Source: Squalus acanthias (lineage: Eukaryota). Taken from it: DNA of 64,000 nucleotides. Made by a program: the position numbers and the translations under genes. Position 1 is the first letter of the stretch. Every line of letters starts with the position of its first letter. Shown here one piece after another: positions 7,663-61,714 of the stretch. The notes beneath the pieces are model-generated. The model made no database searches. It saw only the letters and a list, made by a program, of their open reading frames with translations, and was not told the origin of the DNA. The DNA is taken from the NCBI GenBank assembly GCA_030390025.1, contig JASTWF010000069.1:744001-808000 (forward strand). Direction: 5' to 3'.

Positions 7663-8028
7663 CTGTATTGTCAGAGGAGTGGAAAGGCGAGACTCCACGA
7701 GAGGTGACAGCACAGGAAGGTTTGTGTGCACAGATTCCATGTCATTACACTTATCCATCGCGTCTGGCAAACCAACCACGAGTTGGAATCTGGATTAATT
7801 ATGGGGAACGGAGATCATCGTCTATAGCCTTTCACTCCAAGGATCACAATCACTCGTTGCCACAGTTTCGCCATCGGACACGGCTGTCTGGAGACCTGAG
7901 AGATGGTGACTGTTCCCTGATTATAAACAACATCACACAGCGAGACGCAGGACCTTATTATTTCAGAATAGAATTTGACAACTGGAATCAGTTTGACTAC
8001 TGGCCTGGAACACAGCTTCATGTTTCTG
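7663..8028 (+). CDS. Siglec V-set exon (copy 1)
   Basis: ctctccccag|CT GTA TTG ... TCT G|gtaagt, 366 nt, open. Siglec Cys pattern and YYFRIE are present. Confidence 0.93.
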
Positions 8029-8319
8029 GTAAGTGCTGGGTTATAATTACTCCACAATTCACGCTCAACAGTCAGTGGGAAATAACAGAAACTGTGGCGG
8101 TTACACATTAACACAAAACACAGCTTATTATAACACAGCGTCTGATTATCAATAACCTGGCGATACCTTCCAGTTCAGTCCTAAAGCAAACTCTAATACT
8201 CACTTTTTTATCAATGATTGAATGTCTTGACTGTGTCCATCATTGTTATCAGGTTATCGACTCCCATCTATCTCTCTAATTGTGTTTAAAAGTCTTACAT
8301 ACAGACAAAAGACAGTCTC

Positions 8320-8598
8320 ACATTTCTCCAGCACCTTTCACCACCTCAGGAGGTTCCAAAGCGCTTCACAGACAATGAAGTTCTTTTTTTGAAGTGTGGT
8401 CACTGTTGTAATGTAGGAAACATGGCAGCCAGTTTGTGCACAGCAAGCTCCCACAAACAGCAATGGGTTAATGAGCAGATCATCGGGTTTAACATTTCAA
8501 AAGTACTTCATTGGCTGTGAAGCGCTTTGGGACGTCCTGAGGTCTGAAATGCGCTGTAGCAATGCAAGTCTTTCTTTTAAATGTTGGTTGAGGGATAA
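8320..8598 (-). mobile_element. DeuSINE-type SINE 3' fragment (paralogues at ~22180-22457 and ~56500-56770)
   Basis: cacagcaagctcccacaaacagcaatg and ggttgagggataa motifs shared with other SINE copies in the window. Confidence 0.65.
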
Positions 8599-8829
8599 TT
8601 GCAAATTGTTTCTGTCCTGCCATGGAGAGGATTTAATTTAACATTGGCGGAGATCTCTGAGCGAGTGGAGAGCCAGTATTCCTGGGGCTGTGACCAGGTC
8701 CTCCACCCCCACCCAGTATTGTCAATTCAAGGGTCTCGGAGAGAAAGTGCATTATGCTCAGTGACAGAAACTCCGCCAATCCTGGAAATAGGAAATAATA
8801 TTTTCTTACAGATTCACACAAAGTTACAT

Positions 8830-9297
8830 AGAGTCTACCGCACAGAAAGAGGACATTCAGCACAACTGGTCCATCCCGGTGTTTATGCTCCACACCAGCC
8901 TCCTCCCACCCCTCTTCATCTCACCCCATCAACATATCCTTCTATTCCTTTCTCCCTCATGTGTTTATTCAGCTTCCCCTTAAATGCATCTCTGCTCTTC
9001 GCCTCAACCACTCCCTGTGGTAGCGAGTTGCCCATTCTCACCACTCTCTGGGTAAAGAAGTTTCTCCTGAATTCCCTATTGGATTTATCAGTGACTATCT
9101 TATATTGATGGCCCTTAATTCTGGTCTCCCCCACAAGTGGAAACATCTTCTCTACGTCTACCCTATCAAACCCTACCATGATTTTTTGGACCTCTATCAG
9201 GTCACCCCTCAGCCTTCTCTTTTCTAGAGAAAAGAGCCCCAGCCTGTTCAATCATTCCTGATTGTTGTAACCTCTCAGTTCTGGTATTATCCTTGTA
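8830..9297 (-). mobile_element. CR1 3' fragment in the V-C2 intron (paralogues 22690-23157 on -, 55055-55520 on +)
   Basis: LGLFSLEKRRLRGDLIEV...NFFTQRVV CR1 ORF2 C-terminus. Confidence 0.88.
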
Positions 9298-9387
9298 AAA
9301 GTACTTTCTCTTGCGGGACTGTGATTTCTATTTGAACTGATGCCTCAAGTTATATTTATCTAAAAGCATCCATTCTCTGTGTGTTAG

Positions 9388-9681
9388 ATTTCACAGATAA
9401 ACCCAGGATATTCCCTGCTGAAATGATTGCAGGAAAGCGTGTGAACGTAAGCTGCACCTTCAACACCACGTGCACTGGAACAGCACCTGTCTTAACCTGG
9501 GTCAATCACACTGACGTACCCGGGTCAGTCTCAAACAGTGTAACTCAGCATGGCGTCACTCTGACATATACTTCTGTTCTGTCCCTGATTCCATCACTCA
9601 AACACCACGGACAAACTCTCAGCTGCAGAGTCAGATATCCATCTGTTTCATCGGAGCAGACCCTCGCAGTCACTTTGCAAT
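9388..9681 (+). CDS. Siglec C2-set exon (copy 1)
   Basis: gtgttag|AT ... CAA T|gtaagt, 294 nt, open, phase 1/1. Confidence 0.93.
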
Positions 9682-9884
9682 GTAAGTACGGGCTTCCTTA
9701 ATTCTACATTCCCTGTGACAGTCCAGATTGTGCACAGCAAGATCCCACAAGCAGCAATGTTCCGATGACAAGATCATCTGTATTTTACAGCTGGAGCCTT
9801 TGTGGAATAGTGTCAGGGGGACATTTATATCCACCTGAGAGGGCAGACGGTGCCTCAGGTTATAAAATTCATGTGAAAGACGGC

Positions 9885-12800
9885 ACCTCCAACAGTGCGG
9901 CGCTCCCTCAGTACGGCCCCTCGGACAGTGCGGCGCTCGCTCAGTACTGCCCCTTCGACAGGTCGTGGCTTCCTCAGTAATGCCCCTCCAACAGTGCGGC
10001 GCTCCCTCAGTACTGCCCCTCCGACAGTGCGGCGCTCCATCAGTAATGCCCCTCTGACAGTGCGGGGTTCAATCAGTACCGCACCTCCGACAGTGCAGCG
10101 CTCTCTCAGTACTGCCTCTGCGACAGTGCAGCACTCCCTCAGTATTGCACTTCCGACAGTGCATCATTCCCTCAGTGCTCCCCCTCAGACAGTGCGGCGC
10201 TCCCTCAGTACTGCACCCCCGACAATGCGGCGCTCCCTCAGTACTGCCCCTCCGACAGTGCAGCGCTCCCTCAGTAATGCCCCTTCGACAGCGCAGCGCT
10301 AACTCAGTATTGCCCCTCCGACAGTGCGACGCTCTCTCAGTACTGCCCCTCCGACAGTGCGGCGCTCCCTCAGTACTGCCCCTCCGACAGTGCGGCGCTC
10401 CCTCAGTACTGCCCCTCCGACAGTGCAGCGCTCCATCAGTAATGCCCCTCTGAAAGTGCGGCGCTCCCTCAGTACCACCCCTCCGACAGTGCGGCGCTCC
10501 CTCAGTACCACCTCTCCGACAGTGCAGCACTCCCACAGCACTGCCCCCTCCGCCAGTGCGGTGCTCCCTCAGTACTGCCCCTCCGCCAGTGCGGCGCTCC
10601 CTCAGTACTGCCCCTCAGACAGTGCAGCCTACCCTCAGTACTGCTCCTCGGACAGTGCGGCGCTCCCTCAGTACTGCCCCTCCGACAGTGCGGCGCTCCC
10701 TCAGTACTGCCCCTCCGACAGTGCGGTGCTCCCGCAGTACTGCCCCTCCGACAGTGCGGCGCTCACTCAGTATTGCCCCTCCGACAGTGCAGCAATCCCT
10801 CAGTACTGCCCCTCCGACAGTGCAGCGCTCCCTCAGTACTGGCCCTCCGACAGTGCGGCGCTCCCTCAGTACTGCCCCTCCGACAGTGCGGCGCTCCCTC
10901 AGTACTGTTATCCGACAGTGCGGCGCTCCCTCAGTATTGCCCCTCCGATAGTGCGTCACTCCCCCAGTACTGACTCTCCGACAATGCGGCGCTCCATCAG
11001 TAATACCCCTTTGACAGTGCAGCGCTCCCTCAGTACCTCCCCTCCGACAGTGCAGCGCTCCCTCAGTACTGCCTCTCCGACAGTGCAGCGCTCCCTCAGT
11101 ACTGCCCCTCCGATAGTGCGGCGCTCCCTCAGTACTGACCCCCTGACAGTGCGGCGCTCCCTCAGTGCTGCCCCTCCGACAGTGCGGCACTCCCTCAGTA
11201 CTGCCCCTCCGACAGTGCAGCCGCTCCCTCAGTACTGCCCCTCCGACAGTGCGGCGCTCCCTTATTACTGCCCCCTCCGACAGTGCGGTGCTCCCTCAGT
11301 ACTGCCCCTCCGACTAGTGCGGCGCTCCCTCAGTACTGCCCCTCCGACAGTGCGGCGCTCCCTCAGTACTGCCCTCCGACAGTGCGGCGCTCCCTCAGTA
11401 CTGCCCCTCCGACAGTGCGGCGCTCCCTCAGTACTGCCCCTCCGACAGTGCGGCGCTCCCTCAGTACTGCCCCTCCGACAGTGCGGCGCTCCATCAGTAC
11501 TGCCCCTCCGACAGTGCAGGCGCTCCCTCAGTACTGCCCCTCCGACAGTGCAGGCGCTCCCTCAGTACTGCCCCTCCGACAGTGCGGCGCTCCCTCAGTA
11601 CTGCCCCTCCGACAGTGCAGCCTCCCTCAGTACTGCCCTCCGACAGTGCGGCGCTCCCTCAGTACTGCCCCTCCGACAGTGCGGCGCTCCCTCAGTACTG
11701 CCCCTCGGACAGTGCAGGCGCTCCCTCAGTACTGCCCCTCCGACAGTGCGGCGCTCCCTCAGTACTGCCCCTCCAACAGTGCGGCGCTCCCTCAGTACTG
11801 CCCCTCCGACAGTGCGGCGCTCCATCAGTAATGCCCCTCTGACAGTGCGGGGTTCAATCAGTACCGCACCTCCGACAGTGCAGCGCTCTCTCAGTACTGC
11901 CTCTGCGACAGTGCAGCACTCCCTCACTATTGCACTTCCGACAGTGCATCATTCCCTCAGTGCTCCCCCTCAGACAGTGCGGCGCTCCCTCAGTACTGCA
12001 CCCCCGACAATGCGGCGCTCCCTCAGTACTGCCCCTCCGACAGTGCAGCGCTCCCTCAGTAATGCCCCTTTGACAGCGCAGCGCTAACTCAGTATTGCCC
12101 CTCCGACAGTGCGACGCTCTCTCAGTACTGCCCCTCCAACAGTGCGGCGCTCCCTCAGTACTGACACTCCGACAGTGCGGCGCTCCCTCAGTACTGCCCC
12201 TCCGACAGTGCAGCGCTCCATCAGTAATGCCCCTCTGAAAGTGCGGCGCTCCCTCAGTACCACCCCTCCGACAGTGCGGCGCTCCCTCAGTACCACCTCT
12301 CCGACAGTGCAGCACTCCCACAGCACTGCCCCCTCCGCCAGTGCGGTGCTCCCTCAGTACTGCCCCTCCGCCAGTGCGGCGCTCCCTCAGTACTGCCCCT
12401 CAGACAGTGCAGCCTACCCTCAGTACTGCTCCTCGGACAGTGCGGCGCTCCTTCAGTACTGCCCCTCCGACAGTGCGGCGCTCCCTCAGTACTGCCCCTC
12501 CGACAGTGCGGTGCTCCCGCAGTACTGCCCCTCCGACAGTGCGGCGCTCACTCAGTATTGCCCCTCCGACAGTGCAGCAATCCCTCAGTACTGCCCCTCC
12601 GACAGTGCAGCGCTCCCTCAGTACTGCCCCTCCGACAGTGCGGCGCTCCCTCAGTACTGCCCCTCCGACAGTGCGGCGCTCCCTCAGTACTGTCCCTCCA
12701 ACAGTGCGGCGCTCCCTCAGTACTGCCCTCCGACAGTGAGGCTCTCCCTCAGTTCGGCCCCTCCGACAGTGCGGCGCTAACTCAGTACTGCCCATCCGCT

Positions 12801-15800
12801 GGTGCGGCGCTCCCTCACTACTGCCCCTCTGACAGTGCGGCACTCCATCAGTACTTCCCCTCCGTCAGTGCAGCGCTCCATCTGTAATGCCCCCTCCGCC
12901 AGTGCGGCGCTCCCTCAGTACTGCCCCTCCGACAGTGCGGCGCTCACTCAGTACTGCCCCTCCGACAGTGCAGCACCACCTCAGTACTGCCCCTCAGACA
13001 GTGCAGCGTACCCTCAGTACTGCCCCTCGGACAGTGCGGCGCTCCCTCAGTACCGCCCGTCCGACAATGCGGCCCTCCCTCAGTACCGCCTCTCCGACAG
13101 TGCGGCGCTCCCTCATTACTGCCCCCTCCGCCAGTGCGGTGCTCCCTCAGTACTGCCCCTCCGATAGTGCGGCGCTCCCTCAGTACTGCCCCTCCGATAG
13201 TGCAGCGCTCACTCAGTAATGCCTCTCAGACAGTGCGGCGCTCCCTCAGTACTGCCCCTCGGACAGTGCGGCGCTCCCTCAGTACTGCCCCTCCGACAGT
13301 GCGGCGCTCCCTCAGTACTGCCCCTCCGACAGTGCGACGCTCCCGCAGTACTGCCCCTCCGACAGTGCGGCGCTCCCTCAGTACTGCCCCCTCCGACAGT
13401 GCGGCGCTCCCTCAGTACTGCCCCTCCAATAGTGCGGCGCTCACTCAGTACTGCCTCTCAGACTGTGCAGCCTACCCTCAGTAATGCCCCTCGGACAGTA
13501 CGGTGCTCCCTCAGTACTGGTCCTCCGACAGTGCGGCGCTCCCTCAGTACAGGCCCACCGACTATGCGGCACTCCGACTATGCGGCACTCCCTCAGTAAT
13601 GCCCCTCTGACAGTACGGCGCTCCCTCAGTACTGCCCCTCCAACAGTGCAGCGCTCCCTCAGTACTGCCCCTCCGACAGTGCGGCGCTCCATCAGTAATG
13701 CCCCTCTGACAGTGCGGGGTTCAATCAGTACCGCACCTCCGACAGTGCAGTGCTCTCTCAGTACTGCCTCTCCGACAGTGCAGCGCTCCCTCAGTATTGC
13801 ACTTCTGACAGTGCATCATTCCCTCAGTGCTCCCCCTCAGACAGTGCGGCGCTCCCTCAGTACTGCACCCACGACAATGCGGCGCTCCCTCAGTACTGCC
13901 CCTCCGACAGTGCAGCGCTCCCTCAGTAATGCCCCTTCGACAGCGCAGCGCTAACTCAGTATTGCCCCTCCGACAGTGCGACGCTCTCTCAGTACTGCCC
14001 CTCCGACAGTGCGGCGCTCCCTCAGTACTGACACTCCGACAGTGCGGCGCTCCCTTAGTACTGCCCCTCCGACAGTGCAGCGCTCCATCAGTAATGCCCC
14101 ACTGAAAGTGCGGCGCTCCCTCAGTACCGCCCCTCCGACAGTGCGGCGCTCCCTCAGTACCGCCTCTCCGACAGTGCAGCACTCCCACAGCACTGCCCCC
14201 TCCGCCAGTGCGGTGCTCCCTCAGTACTGCCCCTCCGCCAGTTCGGCGCACCCTCAGTACTGCCCCTCAGACAGTGCAGCCTACCCTCAGTACTGCCCCT
14301 CGGACAGTGCGGCGCTCCCTCAGTACTGCCCCTCCGACAGTGCAGCGCTCCCTCAGTACTGCCCCTCCGACAGTGCGCGCTCCCTCAGTACTGCCCCTCC
14401 GACAGTGCGGCGCTCCCTCAGTGCTGTCCCTCCAAAAGTGCGGCGCTCCCTCAGTACTGCCCTCCGACAGTGCGGCGCGCCCTCAGTTCGGCCACTCCGA
14501 CAGTGCGGCGCTAACTCAGTACTGCCCATCCGCCGATGCGGCGCTCCCTCACTACTGCCCCTCTGACAGTGCGGCACTCCATCAGTACTTCCCCTCCGTC
14601 AGTGCAGCGCTCCATCTGTAATGCCCCCTCCGCCAGTGCGGCGCTCCCTCAGTACTGCCCCTCAGACAGTGCAGCGTACCCTCAGTACTGCCCCTCGGAC
14701 AGTGCGGCGCTCCCTCAGTACCGCCCCTCCGACAATGCGGCCCTCACTCAGTACCGCCTCTCCGACAGTGCGGCGCTCCCTCGTTACTGCCCCCTCCGCC
14801 AGTGCGGTGCTCCCTCAGTACTGCCCCTCCGATAGTGTGGCGCTCCCTCAGTACTGCCCCTCCGATAGTGCAGCGCTCACTCAGTAATGCCTCTCAGACA
14901 GTGCGGCGCTCCCTCAGTACTGCCCCTTGGACAGTGCGGCGCTCCCTCAGTACTGCCCCTCCGACAGTGCGGCGCTCCCTCAGTACTGCCCCTCCGACAG
15001 TGCGACGCTCCCGCAGTACTGCCCCTCCGACAGTGCAGCGTACCCTCAGTACTGCCCCTCGGACAGTGCGGCGCTCCCTCAGTACCGCCCCTCCGACAAT
15101 GCGGCCCTCCCTCAGTACCGCCTCTCCGACAGTGCGGCGCTCCCTCATTACTGCCCCCTCCGCCAGTGCAGTGCTCCCTCAGTACTGCCCCTCCGATAGT
15201 GCGGCGCTCCCTCAGTACTGCCCCTCCGATAGTGCAGCGTTCACTCAGTAATGCCTCTCAGACAGTGCGGCGCTCCCTCAGTACTGCCCCTCGGACAGTG
15301 CGGCGCTCCCTCAGTACTGCCCCTCCGGCAGTGCGGCGCTCCCTCAGTACTGCCCCTCCGACAGTGCGACGCTCCCGCAGTACTGCCCCTCCGACAGTGC
15401 AGCGCTCCCTCAGTACTGCCCCCTCCGACAGTGCGGCGCTCCCTCAGTACTGCCCCTCCAATAGTGCGGCGCTCACTCAGTACTGCCTCTCAGACTGTGC
15501 AGCCTACCCTCAGTAATGCCCCTCGGACAGTACGGTGCTCCCTCAGTACTGGTCCTCCGACAGTGCGGCGCTCCCTCAGTACAGGCCCACCGACTATCCG
15601 GCACTCCGACTATGCGGCACTCCCTCAGTAATGCCCCTCTGACAGTACGGCGCTCCCTCATTACTGCCCCTTCGACAGGTCGTGGCTCCCTCAGTACTGC
15701 CCCTCCAACAGTGCGGCGCTCCCTCAGTACTGCCCCTCCGACAGTGCGGCGCTCCATCAGTAATGCCCCTCTGACAGTGCGGGGTTCAATCAGTACCGCA

Positions 15801-18043
15801 CCTCCGACAGTGCAGTGCTCTCTCAGTACTGCCTCTCCGACAGTGCAGCGCTCCCTCAGTATTGCACTTCCGACAGTGCATCATTCCCTCAGTGCTCCCC
15901 CTCAGACAGTGCGGCGCTCCCTCAGTACTGCACCCCGACAATGCGGCGCTCCCTCAGTACTGCCCCTCCGACAGTGCAGCGCTCCCTCAGTAATGCCCTT
16001 TCGACAGCGCAGCGCTAACTCAGTATTGCCCCTCCAACAGTGCGACGCTCTCTCAGTACTGCCCCTCCGATAGTGCGGCGCTCCCTTAGTACTGCCCCTC
16101 CGACAGTGCAGCGCTCCATCAGTAATGCCCCACTGAAAGTGCGGCGCTCCCTCAGTACCGCCCCTCCGACAGTGCGGCGCTCCCTCAGTACCGCCTCTCC
16201 GACAGTGCAGCACTCCCACAGCACTGCCCCCTCCGCCAGTGCGGTGCTCCCTCACTACTGCCCCTCCGCCAGTGCGGCGCTCCCTCAGTACTGCCCCTCA
16301 GACAGTGCAGCCTACCCTCAGTAGTGCCCCACGGACAGTGCGGCGCTCCCTCAGTACTGCCCCTCCGACAGTGCAGCGCTCCCTCAGTACTGCCCCTCCG
16401 ACAGTGCGCGCTCCCTCAGTACTGCCCCTCCGACAGTGCGGCGCTCCCTCAGTACTGTCCCTCCGAAAGTGCGGCGCTCCCTCAGTACTGCCCTCCGACA
16501 GTGCGGCGCGCCCTCAGTTCGGCCACTCCGACAGTGCGACGCTCCCGCAGTACTACCCCTCCGACAGTGCGGCGCTCCCTCAGTACTGCCCCCTCTGCCA
16601 GTGCGGCGCTCCCTCAGTACTGCCCCTCCAATAGTGCGGCGCTCACTCAGTACTGCCTCTCAGACTGTGCAGCCTACCCTCAGTAATGCCCCTCGGACAG
16701 TACGGCGCTCCCTCAGTACTGGTCCTCCGACAGTGCGGCGCTCCCTCAGTACTGACCCACCGACTATGCGGCACTCCGACAGTACGGCGCTCCCTCAGTA
16801 CTGACCCTCCGACAGTGCGGCACTTCATCAGTAATGCCCCTCTGAGAGTTCGGCGCTCCCTCAGTACTGCCCCTCGGACAGTGCGGCGCTCCCTCAGTAC
16901 TGCCCCTCCGACAGTGCGGCGCTCCATCAGTAATGCCCCTCTGACAGTGCGGCGCTCCCTCTTTACCACCCCTCCGACTGTGCAGCGCTCCCTCAGTACT
17001 GGCCCTCCGATAGTGCGGCGCTCCCTCAGTACTGCCCCTCCGACAGTGCGGCGCTCCCTCATGACTGCCCCCTCCGCCAGTGCGGCGCTCCCTCAGTACT
17101 GCCCCTCCGACAGTGCGGCGCTCACTCAGTACTGCCCCTCCGACAGTGCAGCACCAACTCAGTACTGCCCCTCAGACAGTGCAGCGTACCCTCAGTACTG
17201 CCCCTCCGACAGTGCGGCGCTCCCTCAGTACCGCCCCTCCGACAGTGCGGCACTCCCTCAGTACTGCCCCTCCGACAGTGCGGCGCTCCCTCATTACTGC
17301 CCCCTCCGCCAGTGCGGCGCTCCCGCAGTACTGCCCCTCCGATAGTGCGGCACTCACCCAGTACTGCCCCTCAGACAGTGCAGCCTACCCTCAGTACTGC
17401 CCCTCGGACAGTGCGGCGCTCCCTCAGTACTGCCCCTCCGACAGTGCGGCGCTCCCTCAGTACTGCCCCTCCGACAGTGCGGCACTCCCTCAGTACTGCC
17501 CCTCCGACAGTGCTGCGCTCACTCAGTACTGCCCCCGGACAGTGCAGCGCTCCTTCAGTACTGCCCCTCCGAAAGTGCGGCGTTCCCTCAGTACTGCCCC
17601 TCAGACAGTGCAGCGCTCACTCAATACTGCCCCTCCGACAGTGTAGCGCTCCTTCAGTACTGCCCCTCCGACAGTGCGGCGTTCCCTCAGTACTGCCCCT
17701 CCGACGGTGCGGCGCTCCATCAGTAATGCCCCTCTGAAAGTGCGGCGCTCCCTCAGTACTGCCCCTCCGACTGTGCGGCGCTCACTCAGTACTGCCCCTC
17801 CGACAGTGCAGCTCTCCCTCAGTACCTGCCCCTCTGATAGTGCGGCGCTCCCTCATTCCTGCCCCTCCGACAGTGCGGCGTTCCCTCAGTACTGTCCCTC
17901 CGACAGTGCTGCACTCCCTCTGTACTGCCCCTCCGACAGTGCAGCGCTCCCTCAGTATTGCCCCTCCGACAGTGCGGCGCTCCCTCAGTGCAGCCATTCC
18001 GACAGTGCAGCGCTCCCTCAGTACCGCCCCTCCGACAGTGCAG
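9885..18043. repeat. 8.2-kb 33-bp minisatellite array with higher-order blocks, growing out of a SINE remnant (9730-9890)
   Basis: About 245 units. Starts at gaaagacggcacctcc of the SINE and ends at the same CR1 junction as 3346. Confidence 0.97.
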
Positions 18044-20131: not shown

Positions 20132-20403
20132 TATGACTCTAGTGATTCAGGATGGAGATAGTGGCGTGAGTTCTGACGGATCCTAATCCACTGTTCCTGC
20201 CTTGAAAGTCAGCACAGAATATACCTCAATGGGTGCATCATTTAGGCATTGTGTTGGGTGGAAGACTTCACTGAACATGGTCCTGAGGTCTGTGAGCCAA
20301 TATAGAATGAACTGTTCCACTCCCGTGCCGAGGATTCCCTTCCATCCGTTGGTTGATGGAGCCATCTGTTGGGTCAAGAATTGTCTTCACATACAGAAAC
20401 ATT

Positions 20404-21168: not shown

Positions 21169-21520
21169 AATTGTGTGCTGAGGAAAAGGCATGAGGACAG
21201 GCGGGTGCGATGTCCACGGGCAAGGTGACTATGAGTCTGTCCGACATGTGGGTTCACTATAATGCTCCCCAATCACAGAACACGGTGCGCAGTGTTTGAT
21301 ATTCATTCTTGGATTGTGTTGTCTCAGTAGCTCTTGTCCTTCTGGGTGGTAGAGGTCGCAGGGGAGGGCGGTGCTGTCAATGTAACCTTGGTGAGTTCCT
21401 TGTGTGTCCTGTAGATGGTCCACACTGCAGACACTGTGCGCCAGTGACGGAGGGGGTGGATATCGAGTCCAGTGGAGCGACAAGCCATCCAGTGCTAAAT
21501 ATTGATATTTCTCTCCCCAG

Positions 21521-47000: not shown

Positions 47001-47004
47001 GACT

Positions 47005-47305: not shown

Positions 47306-47319
47306 TTTCATGCTCAGTT

Positions 47320-50500: not shown

Positions 50501-53500
50501 TCGAGGTCCGAACAGTAGTAAGAGAAAGGCTTACAGCGGTCTTCTTGAACCACTGGTTGCGGGTTTGATAGAAACTGAGTGGCCACTTCAGAGGGCAGTT
50601 AGGAGTCAACCATGTTAGTGTGGGACTGGAGTCACCTATAGGCCCAGACTGGGTAAGGATGGCAGGTTTCCTTCCCTCAAGGGATATAAGTGAACCACCT
50701 TATATATGTAATATCTATATCCATATCGATATCTATATATATATATATCAGCCAACGTCACTAAAATAACAGATTATCTGGTCATTATCACATTGCTGTT
50801 TGTGGGAGCTTGCTGTGCGTAAAATGGAGGCCATGTTCCTACATTACAACAGTGACTACACTGGTATGTCCTGTCCACAAACACAGGACAAATCCAATCC
50901 GGCCAATTACCGCCCCATCAGTCTACTCTCAATCATCAGCAAAGTGATGGAAGGTTTCATTGACAGTGCTATCAAGTGGCACTTACTCACCAATAACCTA
51001 CTCACCGTTGCCCAGTTTGGGTTCCGCCAAGATCACTCGGCTCCAGACTTCATTACAGCCTTGGACCAAACCTGGACAAAGGAGTTGAATTCCAGAGGTG
51101 AGGCGAGAGTGACTGCCCTTGACATCAAGGCAGCGTTTGACCGAGTGAGGCATCAAGGAGCCCCAGTAAAACTGAAGTCAATGGGAATCGGGGGGAAATC
51201 TTTCCACTGGCTGGAGTCATACCTAGCACAAAGGACGATGGTTGTGGTTGTTGAAGTTCAATCATCACAGCCCCAGGACATCGCTGCAGGCACTCCTCAG
51301 GGCAGCCTCCAAGGCCCAACCATCTTCAGCTGCTTCATCAATGACCTTCCCTTCATCATAGGTTCATAGTCATAGAGTCATACAGGCACAGAACGAGGCC
51401 ATTAGGCCCATTGAGTCCGTGCCAGCTCTCTGTAGAGCAATCCAGTCCATCCTATTCCCCCTTTCTATCCCCGTAGCCCTGCAAGTTTATTTCCCTCAAG
51501 TGCCTATCCAATCTCCCCTTGAAAACATCGAGTGTCTCCGCTTCCACAACTTCCGTCGGCAGCGAGTTCCAAGTCATCACCACTCGCTGCATAAAAAGGC
51601 TTTCCCTAACATCCCCCCTGTATCTCTTGCCCAAAACCTTAAATCTGTGTCCCCTAGTCCTTGTACCATCAACTAGTGGGAACAGCCTTTCCCCGTCGAG
51701 CCTATCCAAACCCATCATAATCTTGTACACCTCTATCAAATCACCCCTCAACCTCCATTGCTCTAATGAAAACAAATCCAGCTACTCCTACCTGTCCTTG
51801 TAGCTAAGATCCCCCATCCCCGGAACCATTCTGGTAAATCTCCTCTCCACCCTCTCAAGCTCCTTCACATCCTTCCTAAAGTGTGGTGACCAGAACTGGA
51901 TGCAATACTCCAGTTGTGGCCTAAACAGCACTTTATAAAGATTCAGCATAACTTCTCTACTTTTGTACTCAATACTTCTATTTATGAAGCCCAAGATCCC
52001 ATATGCTTTGCTAACCACTCTCTCAATATGTCCTGTCACCTTCAGGAACCTATGCAAATTAACTCCCAGGTCCCTCTGACCCTGCACACTCTTTAAAACT
52101 GTGCCATTAAGTGTATATTAGCTCTCCCTGTTCCTTCTGCCAAAATGCATCACCTCACACTTCTCTGTATTAAATTCAATCTGCCACTTGTCTGCCCATT
52201 CTGCTAGCCTTTCTATGTCCTGTTGCAGTCGATTGGTATCATCCTCACTGTTTGCCACACCCCCAGGTTTGGTGTGGCCGGCAAATTTAGAAATTCTACT
52301 CTGTATTCCAATATCTAGATTATTTATATATATCAAAAAAAGCAGTGGCCCCAGCACTGACCCTTGGGGAACACCACTGTCTACCATCCTCCAGTCTGAA
52401 AACCAGCCATTTACCACAACTCCCTGTTTTCTGTCCTTAAGCCAATTCCTTATCCACCTGCCACTGACCCACCTATTCCATGAGCCTCAATTTTATTAAC
52501 CAGCCTTCCATGTGCTACTTTGTCAAACGCCTTCCAAAAATTCATGTAGCCAACATCCATTGCATTCCCCTCATCAATTCTCCTTGTTACTCCTTGTGAC
52601 TGCATTGTCGGAGGGCCAGTACTGAGGGAGAACTGTGCTGTCGGAGGGGAGGTACTGAGGTAGTGCTGCACTGTCGGAGGGGCAGTACTGAGGGAGCACT
52701 GTAATGTCGGAGGGGCTGTATTGAGGGAGTGTTGCACTGTCAGAGGGACAGTTCTGAGGGGGTGCCGCACTGTCAGAGGGGCATTACTAATTGAGCGCCG
52801 CACTGTCGGAGGGGCAGTACTGAGGGAGCGGCGCACTGTCGGAGGGGCAGTACTGAGGGAGTGCCGCACTGTCGGAGGGGCAGTACTGCGGGAGTGCCGC
52901 ACTGTCAGAGGGGCATTACTGAGGGAGCGCCGCACTGTCGGATGGGCAGTAGTGAGGGAGCGCCGTACTGTCGGAGGGGCAGTACTGAGTGTGCACCGCA
53001 GTGTCGGAGGGGCAGTACCGAGGGAGCGCCGCACTTTCAGAGGAGCAGTACTGAGGGAACGTCGCACTGTCGGGGGGGCAGTACTGAGGGAGCGCCACAC
53101 TGTCGGAGGGGCAGTACTGCGGGAGCGCCGCACTGTCAGAGGGGCATTACTGAGGGAGCGCCGCACTGTCGGATGGGCAGTACTGAGGGAGCGCCGCACT
53201 GTCGGAGGGGCAGTACTGAGTGTGCACCGCACTGTCGGAGGGGCAGTACTGAGGGAGCGCCGCACTTTCAGAGGGGCAGCACTGAGGGAACGCCGCACTG
53301 TCGGAGGGGCAGTACTGAGGGAGCGCCGCACTGTCGAGGGGCGGTACTGAGGGAGCGCTGCACTGCCGGAGGGGCAGTACTGAGGGAGCGGCACACTGTC
53401 GGAGGGGCAGTACTGAGGGAGTGCCGCACTGTCGGAGGGGCAGTACTTCGGGAGCGCCGCACTGTCAGAGGGGCATTACTGCGGGAGCGCTGCACTGTCG

Positions 53501-56500
53501 GAGAGGCAGTAATGAGGGAGCGCTGCACTGTCGGAGGGACAGCTCTGAGGGGGTGCCGCACTGTCAGAGGGGCATTACTGATTGAGCGCCGCACTGTCGG
53601 AGGGGCAGTACTGAGGGAGCGGCGCACTGTCGGAGGGGCAGTACTGAGGGAGTGCCGCACTGTCGGAGGGGCAGTACTGCGGGAGTGCCGCACTGTCAGA
53701 GGGGCATTACTGAGGGAGCGCCGCTCTGTCGGATGGGCAGTACTGAGGGAGCGCCGCACTGTCGGAGGGGCAGTACTGAGTGTGCACCGCACTGTCGGAT
53801 GGGCAGTACTGAGGGAGCGCCGCACTGTCGGAGGAGCAGTACTGAGTGTGCACCGCACTGTCGGAGGGGCAGTACTGAGGGAGCGCCGCACTTTCAGAGG
53901 GGCAGTACTGAGGGAACGCCGCACTGTCGGAGGGGCAGTACTGAGGGAGCGCCGCACTGTCGAGGGGCGGTACTGAGGGAGCGCTGCACTGCCGGAGGGG
54001 CAGTACTGAGGGAGCGGCACACTGTCGGAGGAGCAGTACTGAGGGAGTGCCGCACTGTCGGAGGGGCAGTACTGAGGGAGTGCCGCACTGTCGGAGGGGC
54101 AGTACTGCGGGAGCGCCGCACTGTCAGAGGGGCATTACTGCGGGAGCGCCGCACTGTCGGAGAGGCAGTAATGAGGGAGTGCCGCACTGTCGGAGGGGCA
54201 GTACTGAGGGAGCGCCGCACTTTGAGAGGGACAGTACTGAGGGAACGCCGCACTGTCGGAGGGGCAGTACTGAGGGAGCGCCGCACTGTCGGAGGGGCAG
54301 TACTGATGGAGCGCTGCACTGTCGGAGGGGCAGTACTGAGGGAGCACCGCACTGTCAGAGGGGCAGAACTGAGGGACCGAAGCAGTGTCGGAGGGTCAGT
54401 ACTGAGGGAGCGCCGCACTGTCGGAGGGGCAGTACTGAGGGAGCGCCGCACTGTCGGAGGTGCCGTCTTTCACATGAGATATTAACCCGAGGCACCGTCT
54501 GTTCTCTCAGGTAGATGTAAAAGATCCCATGACACTATTCAACAAAGAGTCCTGTCTGTAAAATACAGATGATCTTGTCATCGGAACATTGCTGCTTGTG
54601 GGATCTTGCTGTGCGCAAAGTAGACATTCACGGGTAATGTAGAATTAAGGATGTCCTTACTTACATTGCACAGTGAGTGCGAGGGTCTGCTCCGATGAAA
54701 CAGATGGATATCTGACTCTGCAGGTGAGAGTTTGTCCGTGGTGTTTGAGTGATGGAATCAGGGACAGGACAGAAGTATATGTCAGAGTGACACCATGCTG
54801 AGTTACACTGTTTGAGACTGACCCGGGTACGTCAGTGGGATTGACCCAGGTTAAGACAGGTGCTGTTCCATTGCACGTGGTGTTGAAGGTGCAGCTTACG
54901 TTCACACGCTTTCCTGCAATCATTTCAGCAGGGAATATCCTGGGTTTATCTGTGAAATCTAACACACAGAGAATGGATCCTTTTAGATAAATATAACGTG
55001 AGGCATCAGTTCAAATAGAAATCACAGTCCCGCAAGAGAAAGTACTTTTAACAGGATTATACCAGAACTGAGAGATTACAACGATTAGGAAAGATTGAAC
55101 AGGCTGGCGCTCTTTTCTCTAGAAAAGAGAAGGCTGAGGGGTGACCTGATAGAGGTCTTTAAAATTATGAAGGGTTTCGATAGGGTATACGTAGAGACGA
55201 TGTTTCCACTTGTGGGGGAGACCAGAACTAGGGTCCATCAATATAAGATAGTCACTGATAAATCCAATCGGGAATTCAGGAGAAACTTCTTTCCCCAGAG
55301 AGTGGTGATAATGGGGAACTCGCTACCACAGGGAGTGGTTGAGGCGAATAGCAGAGATGCATTTAAGGGGAAGCTGGATAAACACATGAGGGAGAAAGGA
55401 ATAGAAGGATATGTTGATGGGGTGAGATGAAGAGGCGTGGGAGAGGCTAGTGTGGAGCATAATCACCGGGATGGACCAGTTGTGCTGAATGGCCTCTTTC
55501 TGTGTGGCAGACTCGATGTAACTTTGTGTGAATCTGTAAGAAGATTATGGCCCAGAAATTGATCTCGCTCTGTTCCCGCGGGGGTAAGCCTTTCCCGCGA
55601 TGTCTCACCTCGCTTATGCTTTTTCAGATCCAGCTCGCACGAACTTGATGTTCCAGACATCAGCTGTGCTGGGCTTGCGTATCCCAGCGGCGTAGTGAAT
55701 TCGTGCGAGCTGTGGGATCACGTGACTCAGTTAGAGCCAATGGCAGCACACCATCTTCCATTCATAAGTCTCACAGCATGGCGGTGAAATCTATGAATCT
55801 TACACCCCCCCAAAATAACAGCTAAACCTCAATTAAATTAAAAAAAAAAACCATCACATTAATAAAATAAGTATAGTTAATTAAATTAACCATTTTAAAT
55901 AAAAAATTACATTTTTGAAAAAATTTAAAATCTTTTAAAAAGTTATAAAAATAAACTTACCTGTCTTTAAAGTCTCTAAAAAAGATATACCTGTAAAAAA
56001 AAATTCAAAAAAATACTTAATTCACTACTTACCTTCTTAAAAGCGGGTCTTACTCCTCCTTTTTACATTTCCAAAATCTTCCCTACTTACCTGCGCGTCC
56101 AAAGCATGAAGTGCACAGCGTGCGCGCAGCCTGTAGCGCGCACGCGATGCACCCAGGCCCCGCCCCCTTTTCAGAAGAGCAATTGCCGGTTTTCAGCGCA
56201 TGCGCAGGGCATGCAGAAAACCGGCAATTGGAGTGGGAATACGCGAGAGTATGCAGTGCGTACTCTCGCGTCCCGGGATCAATTTTCGGCCCATTGTTTC
56301 CTATTTCCAGTATTGGCAGAGTGTCTGTCACTGAGCTTAATACACTTTCTCTGCGAGACCCTTGAATTCACTATACTGGGTGGGGGTGGAGGATCTGGTC
56401 ACAGCCCCAGGAACACTGGCTCTCCAATCGCTCAGAGATCTCTGCCAATGTTAAATTAAATCCTCTCCACGGCAGGACAGAAACAATTTGCAATTATCAC

Positions 56501-59500
56501 TCAACCAAAACATAAAAGAAAGACTTGCATTGCTACAGCGCATTTCATGACCTCAGGACATCCCAAAGCGCTTCACAGCCAATGAAGTACTTTTGAAGTG
56601 TTAAACCAGATGATCTGGTCATTATCACATTGCTGTTTGTGGGAGCTTGCTGTGCGCAAATTGGCTGCCACGTTTCCTACATGACAACAGTGACCACACT
56701 TCAAAAAAAGAACTTCATTGTCTGTGAAGCGCTTTGGGACCTCCTGAGGTGGTGAAAGGTGCTGGAGAAATGTGAGTCTGTCATTTGTTTGCATGTAAGA
56801 CTTTTAAACACGATTAGAGAGATAGATGGGAGTCGATAAACTGATAACAATCATGGACACAGTCAAGACATTCAATCATTTATAATAAAGTGAGTATCAG
56901 AGGTTGATTTAGGACTGAACTGGAAGGTATCGCCAGGTTATTGATAATCAGACGCTGTGTTATAATAAGCTGTGTTTTGTGTTAATGTGTAACCGCCGCA
57001 GTTTATGTTATTTCCCACTGACTGTTGAGCGTGAATTGTGGAGTAATTATAACCCAGCACTTACCAGAAACATGAAGCTGTGTTCCAGGCCAGTAGGTAT
57101 AGTTATCACTGTTGTTAAATTCTATTCTGAAATAATAAGTTCCTGCGACTCGCTGTGTGATGTTGTTTATAATCAGGGAACAGTCACCATCTCTCAGGTC
57201 TCCAGACAGCCGGGTCCGATGGCGAAACTGTGACGACTCACGATTGTGATCCTTGGAGTGAAAGGCTATAGACCATGATCTCTGTTCCTCATTATTAATC
57301 CAGATTCCAGCTCGCGGTTGGTTTGCCAGATACGATGGATAAGTGTAATGACATGGAATCTGTGCACACAAACCTTCCTGTGCTGTCACCTCTCGTGGAG
57401 TCTCGCCTTTCCACTCCTCTGACAATACAGCTGGGGAGAGAAATATCAATATTTAGCACTGGATGGCTTGTCGCTCCACTGGACTCGATATCCACCCCCT
57501 CCGTCACTGGCGCACAGTGTCTGCAGTGTGGACCATCTACAGGACACACAAGGAACTCACCAAGGTTACATTGACAGCACCGCCCTCCCCTGCGACCTCT
57601 ACCACCCAGAAGGACAAGAGCTACTGAGACAACACAATCCAAGAATGAATATCAAACACTGCGCACCGTGTTCTGTGATTGGGGAGCATTATAGTGAACC
57701 CACATGTCGGACAGACTCATAGTCACCTTGCCCGTGGACATCGCACCCGCCTGTCCTCATGCCTTTTCCTCAGCACACAATGTTTCTGTATGTGAAGACA
57801 ATTCTTGACCCAACAGATGGCTCCATCAACCCAACGGATGGAAGGGAATCCTCGGCACGGGAGTAGACAAGTTCATTCTATAGTGGCTAACAGACCTCAG
57901 GACCCTGTTAAGTGAAGCAAGTCTTCCACCCAACACAATGCCTAAATGACGCACCAATTGAGGTATATTCTGTGCTGATTTACAAGGCAGGAACAGTGAA
58001 TTAGGATCCGTCAGAACTCACGCCACTATCTCCATTCTGAATCACTTTCGTCATAGAGTCATAGAGTCATAACGGCACAGAAGGAGGCCATTCGGCCCAT
58101 CGAGTCCGTGCCGGCTCTCTGTAGAGCAATCCAGTCCGTCCCAATCCCCCGCTCTATCCCCGTAGCCCTGCAAGTTTATTTCCCTCAAGTGCCTATCCAG
58201 TCTCCCCTTGAAAAGATTGAGTGTCTCCGCTTCCACCACTTCCATCAGCAGCGAGTTCCAGGTCCTCACCACTCGTTGCATAAAAAAGATTTTCCTCACA
58301 ATCCGCTGCTCTCTTGCCCAAAACCTTAAATCTGTGTCCCCTAGGACTTGTACCATCAACTAGTGGGAACACCCTTTCCCCGTCTAGCCTATCCAAACCC
58401 ATCATAATCTTGTACACCTCTATCAAATCACCCCTCAACCTCCTTTGCTCTAATGACAACAAATCCAGCTTCTCCAACCTGTCCTTGTAGCTAAGATCCC
58501 CCATCCCCGGAACCATTCTGGTAAATCTCCTCTGCACCCTCTCAAGGGCCTTCACATCCTTCCTAAAGTGTGGTGACCAGAACTGGATGCAATACTCCAG
58601 TTGTGGCCTAACCAGTGCTTTATAAAGCTTCAGCATAACCTCTCTACTTTTGTACTCAATACCTCTATTTTTGAAGACCAAGATCCCATATGCTTTGCTA
58701 ACCACTCTCTCAAAATGTCCCGCCACCTTCAGGGACCTATGCACATTAACTCCCAGGTCCCTCTGTCCCTGCACACGGTTTAAAACTGCCATTAAGTGTA
58801 TATTGCCTCTCCCTGTTCCTTCTGACCAAAATGCATCACCTCATACTTCTCTGTATTAAATTCCATCTGCCACTTGTCTGCCCATTCTGCTAGCCTTTCT
58901 ATGTCCTGTTGCAGTCGATTGGTCTCATCACTGTTTGCCACACCCCCAAGTTTGGTGTCGTCGGCAAATTTAGAAATTCTACTCTGTATTCCAATATCCA
59001 GGTCATTGATAGATATAAGAAAAAGCAGTTGCACCAGCACTGACCCTTGGGGAACACCACTGTCTACCATCCTCCAGTCTGAAAAACAGCCATTTACCAC
59101 ATCTCGCTGTTTTCTGTCCATAAGCCAATTCCTTATCCAAGCTGCCACTGACCCACCTATTCCATGAGCCTCAATTTTGTTAACCAGCCTTCTATGTGGT
59201 ACTTTGTCAAACGCCTTCCGAATATCCATGCAGGCAACATCCATTGCATTCCCTTCATCAATCCTCCTTGTTACTTCACAAAAAATTCAGTTACATTAGT
59301 CAAACACGATCTGCCTTTTACAAATCCGTGTTGGCTCTCCTTAATTAGCTTAAACATCTCCAAGTGTCCGATAATTTTTTCCTTGATTATTGTTTCTAAA
59401 ACTACACCCACCAACGATGTTATACTGACCGGCCTGTAGTTATTAGAATTGTCCGTACACCCTGTCTTTAACAATGGTGTCACATTTGACACTTTCCAAT

Positions 59501-61714
59501 CCTTAGGCACCTGCTCTGCATCTAGGGAAGATTGGAAAATTATGGCAAGCCCTTCCGCTATCTCCTCCCCCAATTCCCTTAGCAAGCCTGACCTTCTTGT
59601 TTGCTCTTCAGCCCTCTTGATTGTCTAAGCTGATTCAGTCTACTTGGCGAATTTTGGATTCTCATTGACCCACCTATTCCATGAGCCTCAATTTTGTTAA
59701 CCAGCCTTCTATGTGGTACTTTGTCAAACGCCTTCCTAAAATCCATGTAGACAACATTCATTGCATTCCCTTCATTTACCGTCCCTGTTACTTCATCAAA
59801 AAATTCAATTATATTAGTCAAACATGATAGCCTTTTACAAATCTGTGTTGGCTCTCCTTAATTAGCTTAAACATCTGCAATTATCCCATAACTTTTTCCT
59901 AGCAAGCCTAACTTTCTTGTTTGCTCTTCAGCCCTTCTGATTGTCTAAGCTGATAGAGTCTACTTGGCGAATTTTGGATCCACATTGTACAAGGAATCTC
60001 TTTGGATTCTCATTGACTGCAGAATCTCTTTGGATCCTCATTGTCTAAGCAAACTCTTTGGATCCTCATTGTCTAAGGAATCTCTTTGGATTCTCATTGT
60101 CTAAGGAATCTCTTTGGATTCTCAATGTCTAAGGAATCACTTTTGATTCTCATTGTCTAAGGAATCTCTTTGGATTCTCATTGTCTAAGGAATCTCTTTG
60201 GATTCTCATTGTCTAAGGAATCACTTTGGATTCTCATTGTCGAAGGAATCTCTGTGGATCCTCATTGTCTAAGGAATCTCTGTGGATCCTCATTGTCTAA
60301 GGAATCTCTCTGGATTCTCATTGTCTAAGGAATCTCTTTGGATCCTCATTGTCTAAGGAATCTCTTTGGATCCTCATTGTCTAAGGAATATCTTTGGATT
60401 CTCATTGTCTAAGGAATCTCTTTGGATTCTCATTGTCTAAGGAATCTCTTTGGATTCTCATTGTCTAAGGAATCTCTTTGGATTCTCATTGTCTAAGGAA
60501 TCTCTTTGGATTCTCATTGTCTAAGGAATATCTTTGGATTCTCATTGTCTAAGGAATCTCTTTGGATTCTCATTGTCTAAGTAATCTCTTTGGATTCTCA
60601 TTGTCTGAGGGATTATTTTAGTTCCAACAATATTGCTGTAGGGTGATTCCGATACAGCATTGTAGACTGACTTGTCCCCAAGCTCAGCACTGGCCCTACT
60701 CCAGCAGACTCTTTGAAGCACAGGAGCGAATCGCCTCTCGCCTGAGCGCTGTATGTGTCGGAGGTGCAGAGGCATTGGGTTCATGACTTTTGCAGGCGGT
60801 CTCGCTGCGTGTTTGTTAAAACTGAACTATGCCTCACACTAAACGTCGGTGGCAAACACACCTTGTTCCGTGTTCGTCTGAAATATTCATGATTTCAGCA
60901 GGGCTGTGGGGAAAGAGCGGGGGAGTGGGATTAATTGGATAGCTCTATCAAAGAGCCGGCACAGGCACGATGGGCAGAATGGCCTCCTTCTGTGCTGTAT
61001 CATTCTATGATTCTATTAAATGTAACTGCACAGCAGATCAGAGGCAAACAGAGAAACTGTATATATGACACCTTTATATACTTCCTGTCTTGTTTGCTTG
61101 TTATCTTAACCACATCTTGCACCCTTACCACGGTTGCTATCATCCTGAGAATGGGCAGTAATTGTGAGGACTGAACTGCCTGTCTATTCTCAGCACTGCT
61201 GTGCTGTCATCATGGCGAATTGTAACTAAAATTTGGATCTCTGTAATACACCAATTCTGGCCTCTTGTCCATCCCCGAGTTTTGGAAGGGAATTCCAGAG
61301 CTTATGGTCTGGACGTCTGAAGGCACGGCCGCCATTGGTGGATTGATGGAAATCGGGGAGGCACAAGAGGCCTGAATGGGTGGAACGCAGAGATCTCGGA
61401 GGCTTGCAGGGCTGGAGGAGGTTACAGAGATAGTGAGGCAGGGGGCGAGGCCATGGAGCGATTTGAAGACGAGGATGAGGATTTTAAATTTGGGGCGTTG
61501 CCGGACCGGGAGCCAATGTAGATCAGCGAGCGCAGGGTTGAGGAGTGAACGGGACTTGGTGCGAGTTAGGACACTGGGTCACTGCTGAATTTGGCCCCCA
61601 ATCATAGCTCAATAAGAATGATCTTTCACAAAGACTATTAACCATAAGTATGTCCGAGCTGACGATGATATTACCTTGGAGGAGTGACAGGAGGAAGTAA
61701 GATTTTCTGATCAT
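47320..61714 (-). CDS. Complete CD33-like inhibitory Siglec gene (leader-V-C2-TM-cyt1-cyt2), join of 6 exons, 373 aa
   Basis: Exons of 40+366+294+97+82+243 = 1122 nt. All introns are GT-AG with matching phases (1,1,1,2,0) and there are no stops. The protein runs MIRKSYFLLSLLQAVLSEEW...YYFRIE...TM...LLYASI...TEYAEIRFQ*. Orthology is not assigned. Confidence 0.9.
47750..48890 (-). mobile_element. tRNA-derived DeuSINE-type SINE with an internal 33-bp minisatellite expansion (47915-48776)
   Basis: A box GTGGCTCAGTGG and B box GGTTCAAGTCC on the - strand, then ~26 units, then the AGATGAGACATTAAACC...GATCCCATGG core. Confidence 0.8.
48999..49080 (-). CDS. First cytoplasmic exon (RKAATEERASEPSDIAMTTSPLSAKHQ)
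   Basis: ctatttcag|G AGA AAG ... CAC CAG|gtacag, 82 nt, phase 2 in and phase 0 out, exactly bridging the TM and ITIM exons. Confidence 0.85.
49551..49647 (-). CDS. Transmembrane exon of the inhibitory Siglec (GDGNEWRVGLLAAGIALSIALAGFVIFECVRK)
   Basis: gtttttccag|GT...CGAAA|gtaagt, 97 nt, phase 1 in and phase 2 out. Hydrophobic span followed by a basic stop-transfer. This frame is not in the ORF track. Confidence 0.88.
49736..50535 (+). mobile_element. 800-bp solo LTR
   Basis: TGTAAG...CTTACA termini; TSD ACGG/GCGG; AATAAA at 50440. Antisense to the Siglec. Confidence 0.8.
50865..51365 (+). mobile_element. L2/CR1-group LINE RT fragment
   Basis: NYRPISLLS, QFGFR, LDIKAAFDRV, PQGS. Confidence 0.88.
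51366..52599 (-). mobile_element. CR1 copy 'b' in the C2-TM intron of the inhibitory gene
   Basis: Same 5' junction with the minisatellite as at 3347 and 18044; has its own 3' tail and flank. Confidence 0.93.
52600..54462. repeat. 33-bp minisatellite (reverse orientation), ~56 units
   Basis: AGGGAGCGCCGCACTGTCGGAGGGGCAGTACTG units followed by the SINE core at 54462-54620. Confidence 0.97.
54665..54958 (-). CDS. Siglec C2-set exon (copy 3)
   Basis: gtgttag|AT TTC ACA ... CAA T|gtaagt, 294 nt. DFTDKP...VSC.FNTTC.GT.P.LTW...HHGQTLTC.V, including the extra Cys expected for the V-C2 inter-domain disulfide. Confidence 0.95.
55549..56292. mobile_element. MITE family A in the V-C2 intron of the inhibitory gene
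   Basis: GGCCCAGAAATTGA / TCAATTTTCGGCCC TIRs; absent at the paralogous sites ~8800 and ~22660. Confidence 0.82.
57065..57430 (-). CDS. Siglec V-set exon (copy 3, inhibitory gene)
   Basis: ctctccccag| ... TCTG|gtaagt, 366 nt, phase 1/1. Motifs EGLC..IPC, GDCSL.I and YYFRIE with the essential F-strand Arg. Confidence 0.95.
58051..59890 (-). mobile_element. CR1 copy 'a' in the leader-V intron (58051-59580), plus a locally duplicated fragment
   Basis: Extends further 5' (NYRPVSITS, SQHGFVKGRSCLTN) than the other copies; (TATGACTC)n tail at 58051. Confidence 0.9.
59975..60608. repeat. 28-bp VNTR (CTCATTGTCTAAGGAATCTCTTTGGATT), ~22 copies
   Basis: Direct inspection. Confidence 0.95.
61675..61714 (-). 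CDS. Signal-peptide exon of the inhibitory Siglec (MIRKSYFLLSLLQ/A)
   Basis: ggacaATG with A at -3. Ends CAAG|GTAATA in phase 1 and joins the V exon to give ...LLQAVLS-EEW, a plausible signal peptide. An upstream acceptor (ctttctctttcag) would start the exon at 61756. Confidence 0.8.

Follow-up and report, generated by a model that had tools for sequence, protein, structure and literature searches.

Do sharks possess paired activating and inhibitory Siglecs of the kind described for primates? The question is raised by a 64,000-nucleotide stretch of the Squalus acanthias genome (assembly GCA_030390025.1, contig JASTWF010000069.1, positions 744,001 to 808,000; hereafter the window), which carries V-set and C2-set immunoglobulin (Ig) exons of Siglec type on both strands. 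The minus-strand exons belong to a gene whose tail bears an ITIM (immunoreceptor tyrosine-based inhibitory motif); those on the plus strand are followed by an exon encoding a transmembrane segment (TM) with an arginine within it (the Arg-TM exon). A reading of the letters alone (the original prediction) had proposed a pair of opposed genes at this place. In our reading the window probably holds a local pair that belongs to a large elasmobranch family of CD33-like Siglecs, the members of which have two types of membrane and tail end, ITIM and Arg-TM. The coordinates of all features are collected in Table 1.

V-set and C2-set exons

Three copies of the V-set and C2-set exons, not two, were found in the window; they are designated A, B and C. 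The V exons measure 366 bases and the C2 exons 294 bases; each has AG/GT splice sites and is in phase 1 at either end. On the plus strand all four Ig exons have open frames, retain their splice sites and have lost neither the binding Arg described below nor any of their Cys residues.

Pfam recognized V-set (E 7e-12 to 8e-11) and Ig_CD22 in the V exon and C2-set_2 in the C2 exon. When the PDB was searched with the V exon using phmmer, the top 18 distinct sequences were all Siglecs (E 5e-13 to 4e-7), among them MAG, Siglec-5, CD33, sialoadhesin, Siglec-8, -10, -7 and -15. The F-strand Arg in the sequence YYFRIE of the V exon aligns to the Arg of YYFRGD in MAG and of YFFRVE in Siglec-5; all three copies have it, and across 32 elasmobranch sequences its conservation is 90% or higher. 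We take it to be the residue that binds the carboxylate of sialic acid, a function that is putative in the window proteins.

Siglecs are defined by a pattern of Cys residues, namely an intrasheet pair between strands B and E, no Cys on strand F, and an extra Cys in both the V and the C2 domain for an interdomain bond. The V exon possesses GLCAQIPC and DCSL, with no Cys in YYF, and VSCTFNTTC in the C2 exon aligned to LTCSVSWAC of CD33, to the C2 domain of which this exon is nearest, the extra Cys included. A model of the V domain, predicted with the 32 elasmobranch sequences as input, had a mean predicted local distance difference test (pLDDT) of 90, and with this model Foldseek gave Siglecs as 28 of the 28 matches listed up to rank 35 (template-modelling scores 0.77-0.87). 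The V and C2 exons are of Siglec type by sequence and by predicted fold.

If the C2 donor is not used, the reading frame stops within two to six codons in all three copies (9681-9700, 23541-23560 and 54665-54655). The NCBI models P0003 and P0024 likewise terminate just past the C2 domain, and an unspliced C2 end such as theirs would make a soluble isoform possible.

Table 1. Coordinates of the Siglec-type exons, duplication units and satellite arrays in the window
Feature	Position	Strand	Remarks
Minus gene exon 1, leader	61714-61675	-	ATG at 61714; signal peptide MIRKSYFLLSLLQ; phase-1 GT donor
V-set exon, copy C (minus gene)	57430-57065	-	Putative sialic-acid-binding Arg codon 57126-57128
C2-set exon, copy C (minus gene)	54958-54665	-	
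Minus gene TM exon	49647-49551	-	Ends in phase 2; 70% identity to TM of white shark P0020
Minus gene cytoplasmic exon 1	49080-48999	-	82 bases; KRKAATEERASEPSDIAMTTSPLSAKHQ; phase 2 to phase 0
Minus gene last exon	47562-47320	-	LLYASI 47418-47401; TEYAEI 47349-47332; then stop
V-set exon, copy A	7663-8028	+	Open frame; Arg codon 7965-7967
C2-set exon, copy A	9388-9681	+	
V-set exon, copy B	21521-21886	+	Open frame; Arg codon 21823-21825
C2-set exon, copy B	23248-23541	+	
Arg-TM exon	25973-26166	+	Good acceptor, phase 1; Arg codon 26005-26007; stop 26164-26166
Probable 3' untranslated region (UTR) of plus gene	26167-26915	+	AATAAA at 26868; end point inferred
Duplication unit A	3345-9885	+	33-base satellite at either flank
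Duplication unit B	18042-23746	+	33-base satellite at either flank
Duplication unit C	54461-59275	- (inverted)	Own 747-base insertion within V-C2 intron
364-base identical tract	B 21170-21533 (+); C 57781-57418		Candidate conversion tract or constrained intron end
33-base satellite arrays	1-3344; 9886-18041; 23749-24336; 47915-48776; 52602-54460; 62589-63190		

The minus-strand gene

The minus gene (61714-47320) is complete and in frame, and consists of six exons: leader, V, C2, TM and two cytoplasmic exons. Its leader matches those of shark homologues, for instance MIGKSYFLLSLLQ. The TM, VGLLAAGIALSIALAGFVIF, has an uncharged core, with a single Arg just outside it. The first cytoplasmic exon was identified by means of the shark homologues and is required to hold the frame. 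The last exon encodes, near the C-terminus, the ITIM LLYASI and, 17 residues from it, TEYAEI, which resembles an immunoreceptor tyrosine-based switch motif (ITSM). The tail exhibits 51-55% identity to the tails of shark homologues. By addition of the exons, which were compared one by one, the coding length is 1122 bases, near the 377 residues of the ITIM-type 'CD33-like' protein XP_041037177 (P0157) of the white shark, Carcharodon carcharias. As judged from its sequence, the minus gene is a CD33-like Siglec with two Ig domains and an inhibitory-type tail.

The plus-strand units and the Arg-TM exon

The Arg-TM exon reads ILGIRAAIFILAVIATVTGV (TLHTIQILGIRAAIFILAVIATVTGV), after which comes a 37-residue tail without Tyr. 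The motif ILGIRA was found in 10 of the 86 elasmobranch proteins examined, from five species: Scyliorhinus canicula, S. torazame, C. carcharias, Chiloscyllium punctatum and C. plagiosum. The window exon is 55-61% identical to these ILGIRA proteins, and because the motif recurs in other sharks the exon is not a chance open frame. When an Arg is invariant at one position of the TM, this usually indicates pairing with a signalling adaptor. The shark Arg-TM homologues were gathered mainly by a whole-protein search with P0130; the C-terminal region of P0006 gave two proteins.

The homologues include two proteins of S. canicula, 'Siglec-14 isoform X2' (XP_038669862, P0164; 273 residues) and 'Siglec-13' (XP_038668956, P0166; 272 residues), and a 'CD33-like' protein of C. 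carcharias (XP_041037190, P0165). In these three and in P0130 of S. torazame, TVQ or IVQ is followed by one residue and then by SGGE..ILGIRA; that is, C2 is joined straight to the Arg-TM. Since all Ig exons of the window are in phase 1, a transcript of the form V-C2-V-C2-TM and one that uses a single unit would both be in frame. The plus-strand leader may lie to the left of the window. Two pieces of the 3' UTR (26184-26240 and 26562-26793) are repeated at 43485-43775 (91-96% identity), where the TM exon has no copy.

At the level of individual exons the original prediction described both ends correctly. It had given the minus gene a TM without a basic residue followed by LLYASI and TEYAEI, and we find the core uncharged and both motifs in place; it had ascribed to the plus exon at 25973 an Arg in the TM and a tyrosine-free tail, which is what that exon encodes. 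The differing end exons that it postulated, ITIM-tail exons on the minus strand and an Arg-TM exon on the plus strand, can both be read in the window. Its interpretation as an activating and inhibitory Siglec pair holds for the types of exon (Siglec, ITIM and conserved Arg-TM) and falls short at the plus leader and at the joint of C2 to TM.

Transcription

Four sets of contigs were aligned to 21400-26400. In X1 and X5, the depth over exon bins was 24-63 for V, 47-189 for C2 and 23-39 for the TM exon with the 3' UTR, and it was 0 at the unique intron bins 21901-22067 and 25742-25908. One contig with a V exon of A/B type stops at 21886, the exon border, and continues with 16 letters that disagree with the intron; three others begin at 23247, with 11-13 unplaced letters ahead. 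A 141-base contig corresponds to 25993-26133 with zero mismatches, and one of 810 bases extends from 26116 past 26400, in the direction of the AATAAA. Several of the C2 contigs derive from other members of the family. Reading the contigs as spliced RNA, we infer transcription of a V exon of A/B type and of the Arg-TM exon.

At 26120 a contig of X1 shows, within the tail-coding part of the Arg-TM exon, a 10-base tandem insertion, which would shift the frame past the TM and suggests that the distal tail is under little constraint.

Divergence of the three copies and gene conversion

Self-comparison of the window with the satellite arrays masked revealed three related units, overall about 95% identical, each with one V-set and one C2-set exon. 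Unit A (6272-9885) and unit B (20131-23746) show 95.6% identity over 3.6 kb, and both are 93-97% identical to C (54461-57781) in reverse orientation, a result of the self-comparison with which the repeat finder agrees. The three share introns and CR1 pieces; A and B carry some 770 extra bases upstream of the V exon relative to C. These private insertions in each unit indicate that A, B and C are separate loci and not one assembled region copied. Some 600 bases are repeated, about 80% alike and in the same absolute orientation, at 6682-7287, 20541-21147 and 55676-56271; this repeat is located upstream of the V exon in A and B but inside the V-C2 intron in C; such placements represent independent insertions and mark the copies as distinct loci.

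Over the 351 bases that precede the V exon the differences are 1.1% (A-B), 1.1% (A-C) and 0% (B-C). The corresponding values are 2.7%, 7.1% and 8.2% for the V exon, 4.6%, 6.0% and 4.6% for the V-C2 intron, and 2.7%, 2.4% and 2.4% for the C2 exon. Of the 363 bases compared in the V exons, 26 differ between A and C and 30 between B and C; of the 121 residues, 18 and 21 differ, respectively. Between the plus and the minus strand the V domains are 83-85% identical in protein and the C2 domains 95-96%. Of the claim that the opposed genes share near-identical V and C2 exons, the repeats, with 93-97% identity in DNA, and the exon borders were recovered; the wording is too strong for the V exon, with its 18-21 changed residues. 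The C-C' and F-G/G loops set the specificity of Siglecs; the model places 10-11 of the 18 A-C differences either in the C-C' loop or next to the Arg, in the F-G/G region. Changes private to C reach twice their intron density in the V exon, a nominally significant excess (p = 0.010).

The identity extends over 5-6.5 kb and takes in introns and pieces of transposons, at about 95%. Because the exons are no more alike than the introns, the likeness is mostly that of a segmental copy and not of exon-limited homogenization. Homogenization of the 5' coding parts alone is not supported, in view of this extent and of the V exon, which differs by 7-8% as against 4.6-6% in the intron. The longest stretches of identity measure 364 bases between B and C and 260 bases between A and C; in either case 0 of 10000 permutations attained such a length. 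The former hints at recent gene conversion; a constrained intron end would look alike.

One 33-base satellite borders every V-C2 unit (arrays 1-3344, 9886-18041, 23749-24336 and 52602-54460). The satellite arrays are likely the sites of unequal exchange behind the tandem copy, either in place of or in addition to a CR1-CR1 crossover.

Homologues in other sharks and phylogeny

The V exon matches 1085 proteins at E <= 0.001 in a representative protein library, the best 28 of these being elasmobranch. The highest identities in protein, 75% for V and 89% for C2, are with sequences from Mustelus, Scyliorhinus and Carcharodon. NCBI names the elasmobranch homologues Siglec-7/8/10/12/13/14 or CD33-like. 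Like the genes of the window, the NCBI shark models have the same leader, a V and a C2 domain (70-75% and 84-89% identical to the window exons, respectively), and then either an Arg-TM, in proteins of 272-273 residues, or a TM and a tail with LLYA..TEYAxI. For the Arg-TM exon the identity to these models is 55-60%, and for the tail 51-54%. They differ in that they come from other species and are automatic predictions, and the Arg-TM exon of the window starts four residues later and encodes a longer tail. The white shark has dozens of family members, among which XP_041037190 (Arg-TM) and XP_041037191, a member of an ITIM-tail cluster, bear adjacent accessions and are located on one 1.82-Mb scaffold.

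A tree of V domains was built from 37 rows, with P0171 excluded for want of a full V domain; many of its forks are weak. The three V domains of the window constitute one clade (99/97), in which copies of Arg type and ITIM type are sisters and which falls outside the galeomorph cluster. The tail type switches at least seven times among the 24 tail-labelled rows, window copies A and B being labelled Arg-type by assumption. These switches, together with the occurrence of both ends in several shark orders, argue that the ends are old and that the ectodomains have been renewed within lineages.

In a V-only FastTree of 172 rows, a sample without named CD22, Siglec-1 or Siglec-15 orthologues, the elasmobranch sequences and mammalian CD33, Siglec-8 and Siglec-12 form separate clades, and the forks that join them have a support of about 81%. 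Since the deep forks are not resolved, membership in the CD33-related group rests on tail motifs and domain layout and not on phylogeny. Orthology with MAG or SMP was set aside because the 'MAG-like' and 'SMP-like' proteins of Heptranchias fall in another clade.

No study of shark or elasmobranch Siglecs was found in the openly accessible literature. The supposition that such a system is unreported in sharks stands insofar as no paper came to light; the names 'Siglec-14', 'Siglec-13' and 'CD33-like' are already attached to genes of several sharks at NCBI. A 2020 paper describes inhibitory CD33-related Siglecs as lacking from fish genomes (PMC7226832), and the whale shark genome paper mentions Siglecs solely in its list of families that jawed vertebrates gained (PMC8455134).

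Weighing of the explanations

Several results weigh against a functional pair. For a plus-strand leader, BLASTN with the minus leader region returned only chance matches of 11-28 bases, and scans of 3345-7662 and 18042-21520 for the motif and for a signal peptide plus donor found none; unit B has no leader of its own, and the plus transcript may be V-C2-V-C2-TM, single-unit or defective. The RNA nature of the contigs is deduced from their exon-limited cover. Of the transcription that the original prediction had asked of the plus modules, the V and Arg-TM exons are covered by RNA-like contigs, and the joint 23541->25973 is absent among the joints listed (15 of 2908). Letters diagnostic of B are scarce in the contigs, with a depth of 3.4 versus 50-83 for the others. 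It is conceivable, then, that the plus units are non-functional leftovers of segmental duplication which yield at most non-coding or aberrant RNA, next to a functional minus gene and perhaps a separate use of the Arg-TM exon. To the missing leaders of A and B within the window and the rarity of B-type letters can be added the position of unit B behind 8 kb of satellite, the seven non-synonymous versus one synonymous differences between the C2 exons of A and B, and the insertion polymorphism of 10 bases that shifts the frame of the tail. Decay of this kind is, however, difficult to reconcile with four plus-strand Ig exons that are open and intact in splice sites, Cys residues and binding Arg, with an A/B-type V contig that ends exactly at the exon border, or with a TM exon that is conserved between species and has contig cover, of which the preceding intron has none; moreover, the leader may simply be situated left of the window. 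We consider non-functional plus units quite unlikely.

The V domains raise a different objection. With 18-21 of 121 residues changed, as read from the sequences, a common ligand of the pair is not established, and the dN/dS ratio (non-synonymous to synonymous) of the V exon is 2.3 for A-C and 1.9 for B-C, values which alone are not significant (Fisher p = 0.22). Furthermore, a 2014 survey reports that the FcR gamma chain was not found in sharks (PMC4016189). Both genes could thus be functional and yet be unpaired neighbours in a birth-and-death family, binding different glycans, with a partner of the Arg-TM other than an adaptor carrying an ITAM (immunoreceptor tyrosine-based activation motif). 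The changed residues, 10 or 11 of them in the C-C' loop and the F-G/G region by the Arg, would fit this explanation, as would the dozens of white shark members, the seven or more changes of tail type on the V tree and the FcR gamma result. On the other hand, the ectodomain units are each other's nearest relatives, the C2 domains have remained 95-96% identical, the 364-base tract suggests ongoing exchange, and the TM Arg, usually a sign of adaptor pairing, is invariant in five species; we regard unpaired neighbours as an unlikely alternative. That the inverted and tandem copies are an artefact of assembly, arising from haplotypes or mis-joined repeats, might be suspected in a locus so rich in satellite arrays and copies of long interspersed nuclear elements (LINEs), the more so as the runs compared contained less than half of the sampled words. 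But the copies differ by 4.5-5.7%, carry private insertions (747 bases in C and about 770 upstream in A and B) and are linked to different downstream exons, and both architectures occur in other shark assemblies, making this a very improbable explanation.

We favour the reading of the window as a local pair of an ITIM-type and an Arg-TM-type Siglec, arranged tail to tail. If it is correct, the tail of the minus gene would recruit phosphatases with Src homology 2 (SH2) domains through the ITIM and the ITSM-like motif, and leukocyte activation would be damped. On the plus side, two tandem V-C2 units followed by the Arg-TM exon, if spliced as in the shark homologues, would produce an activating-type receptor, presumably signalling through a TM adaptor that possesses an acidic residue and an ITAM; no gene for a TM adaptor was found within the 64-kb window. 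The two end types, which occur in several shark orders, would be old and the V-C2 segment of both genes young. A block of about 5 kb, with its introns and transposons, would have been copied first as an inverted and afterwards as a tandem repeat, with the satellite arrays as the probable sites; the V domain of the inhibitory copy would later have accumulated non-synonymous changes rapidly in the vicinity of the binding site, and local conversion may have added to the copying.

Beyond this locus, we tentatively suggest that cartilaginous fish may possess CD33-like Siglecs as a large family, old and fast in its evolution, whose ITIM and Arg-TM members are repeatedly re-paired by copying or conversion of the V-C2 segment, though we would not put this at even odds. 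If true, the logic of the primate paired Siglecs would be either ancestral to jawed vertebrates or independently arisen, and pairing would operate where FcR gamma is reported missing, that is, with an adaptor not yet identified in sharks. Together with its counterparts in five shark species, the locus would place both signalling designs at the base of the jawed vertebrates. It offers a system for the study of pair renewal by duplication and conversion, of pathogen-driven divergence of the binding site, and of the Arg-TM adaptor in sharks. Its value is comparative. Homologous genes are already present in automatic shark annotations.

Other features of the window

The window contains zero undetermined bases (N). 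Copies of a LINE 3' end of about 900 bases are scattered through it. The satellite ahead of unit A continues beyond the left edge of the window, and that ahead of unit B is the 8 kb mentioned above. An open frame of 677 codons (34622-36652, plus strand), within 34444-36915, has gag-like, aspartic-protease-like and integrase-like parts and is flanked by 238-base direct repeats of 98.7% identity; it sits in GC-rich blocks of about 2 kb that are repeated at 32309-34343 and 36929-38964. The element at 34444-36915 looks like a retroelement remnant. There are no flanking non-Siglec genes within the window, and no Rfam family matched it.

Comparison with known systems

The human SIGLEC5/SIGLEC14 and SIGLEC11/SIGLEC16 genes are described as paired receptors in two accounts (PMC4042635, PMC5701461). 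Going by these, the window resembles the human pairs in combining a partner with an ITIM tail and one with a basic TM and short tail, in the close relationship of the ectodomain DNA, and in an arrangement as neighbouring genes, partly in inverted orientation. Unlike the primate pairs, the ectodomains of which are described as extremely similar, the shark V domains are only 83-85% identical in protein. The shark pair also differs in its block of about 5 kb that is about 95% alike including introns and transposons, in its two tandem V-C2 units, and in belonging to the elasmobranch lineage.

With mammalian CD33 the minus gene shares a V and one C2 domain with the extra Cys pair, and a proximal ITIM with a distal TEY..I/V; the CD33 of Tupaia (P0132) ends in LHYASLSFHGMTPQEGTSTEYSEIRTQ, and the window gene has LLYASINF...TEYAEIRFQ. 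It differs from mammalian CD33 in falling into a separate clade of the V tree, where the deep links are weak, so that orthology is not established.

Teleost NITR/LITR and chicken CHIR are non-mammalian families of paired Ig receptors. To these can be added the CEACAM pairs of Xenopus, as described in one paper (PMC5112662). Like all of these, the shark family is multigenic, has members with an ITIM and members with a charged TM, and combines close ectodomains with rapid turnover. They represent different Ig families, whereas the ectodomain encoded in the window is a lectin domain of Siglec type.

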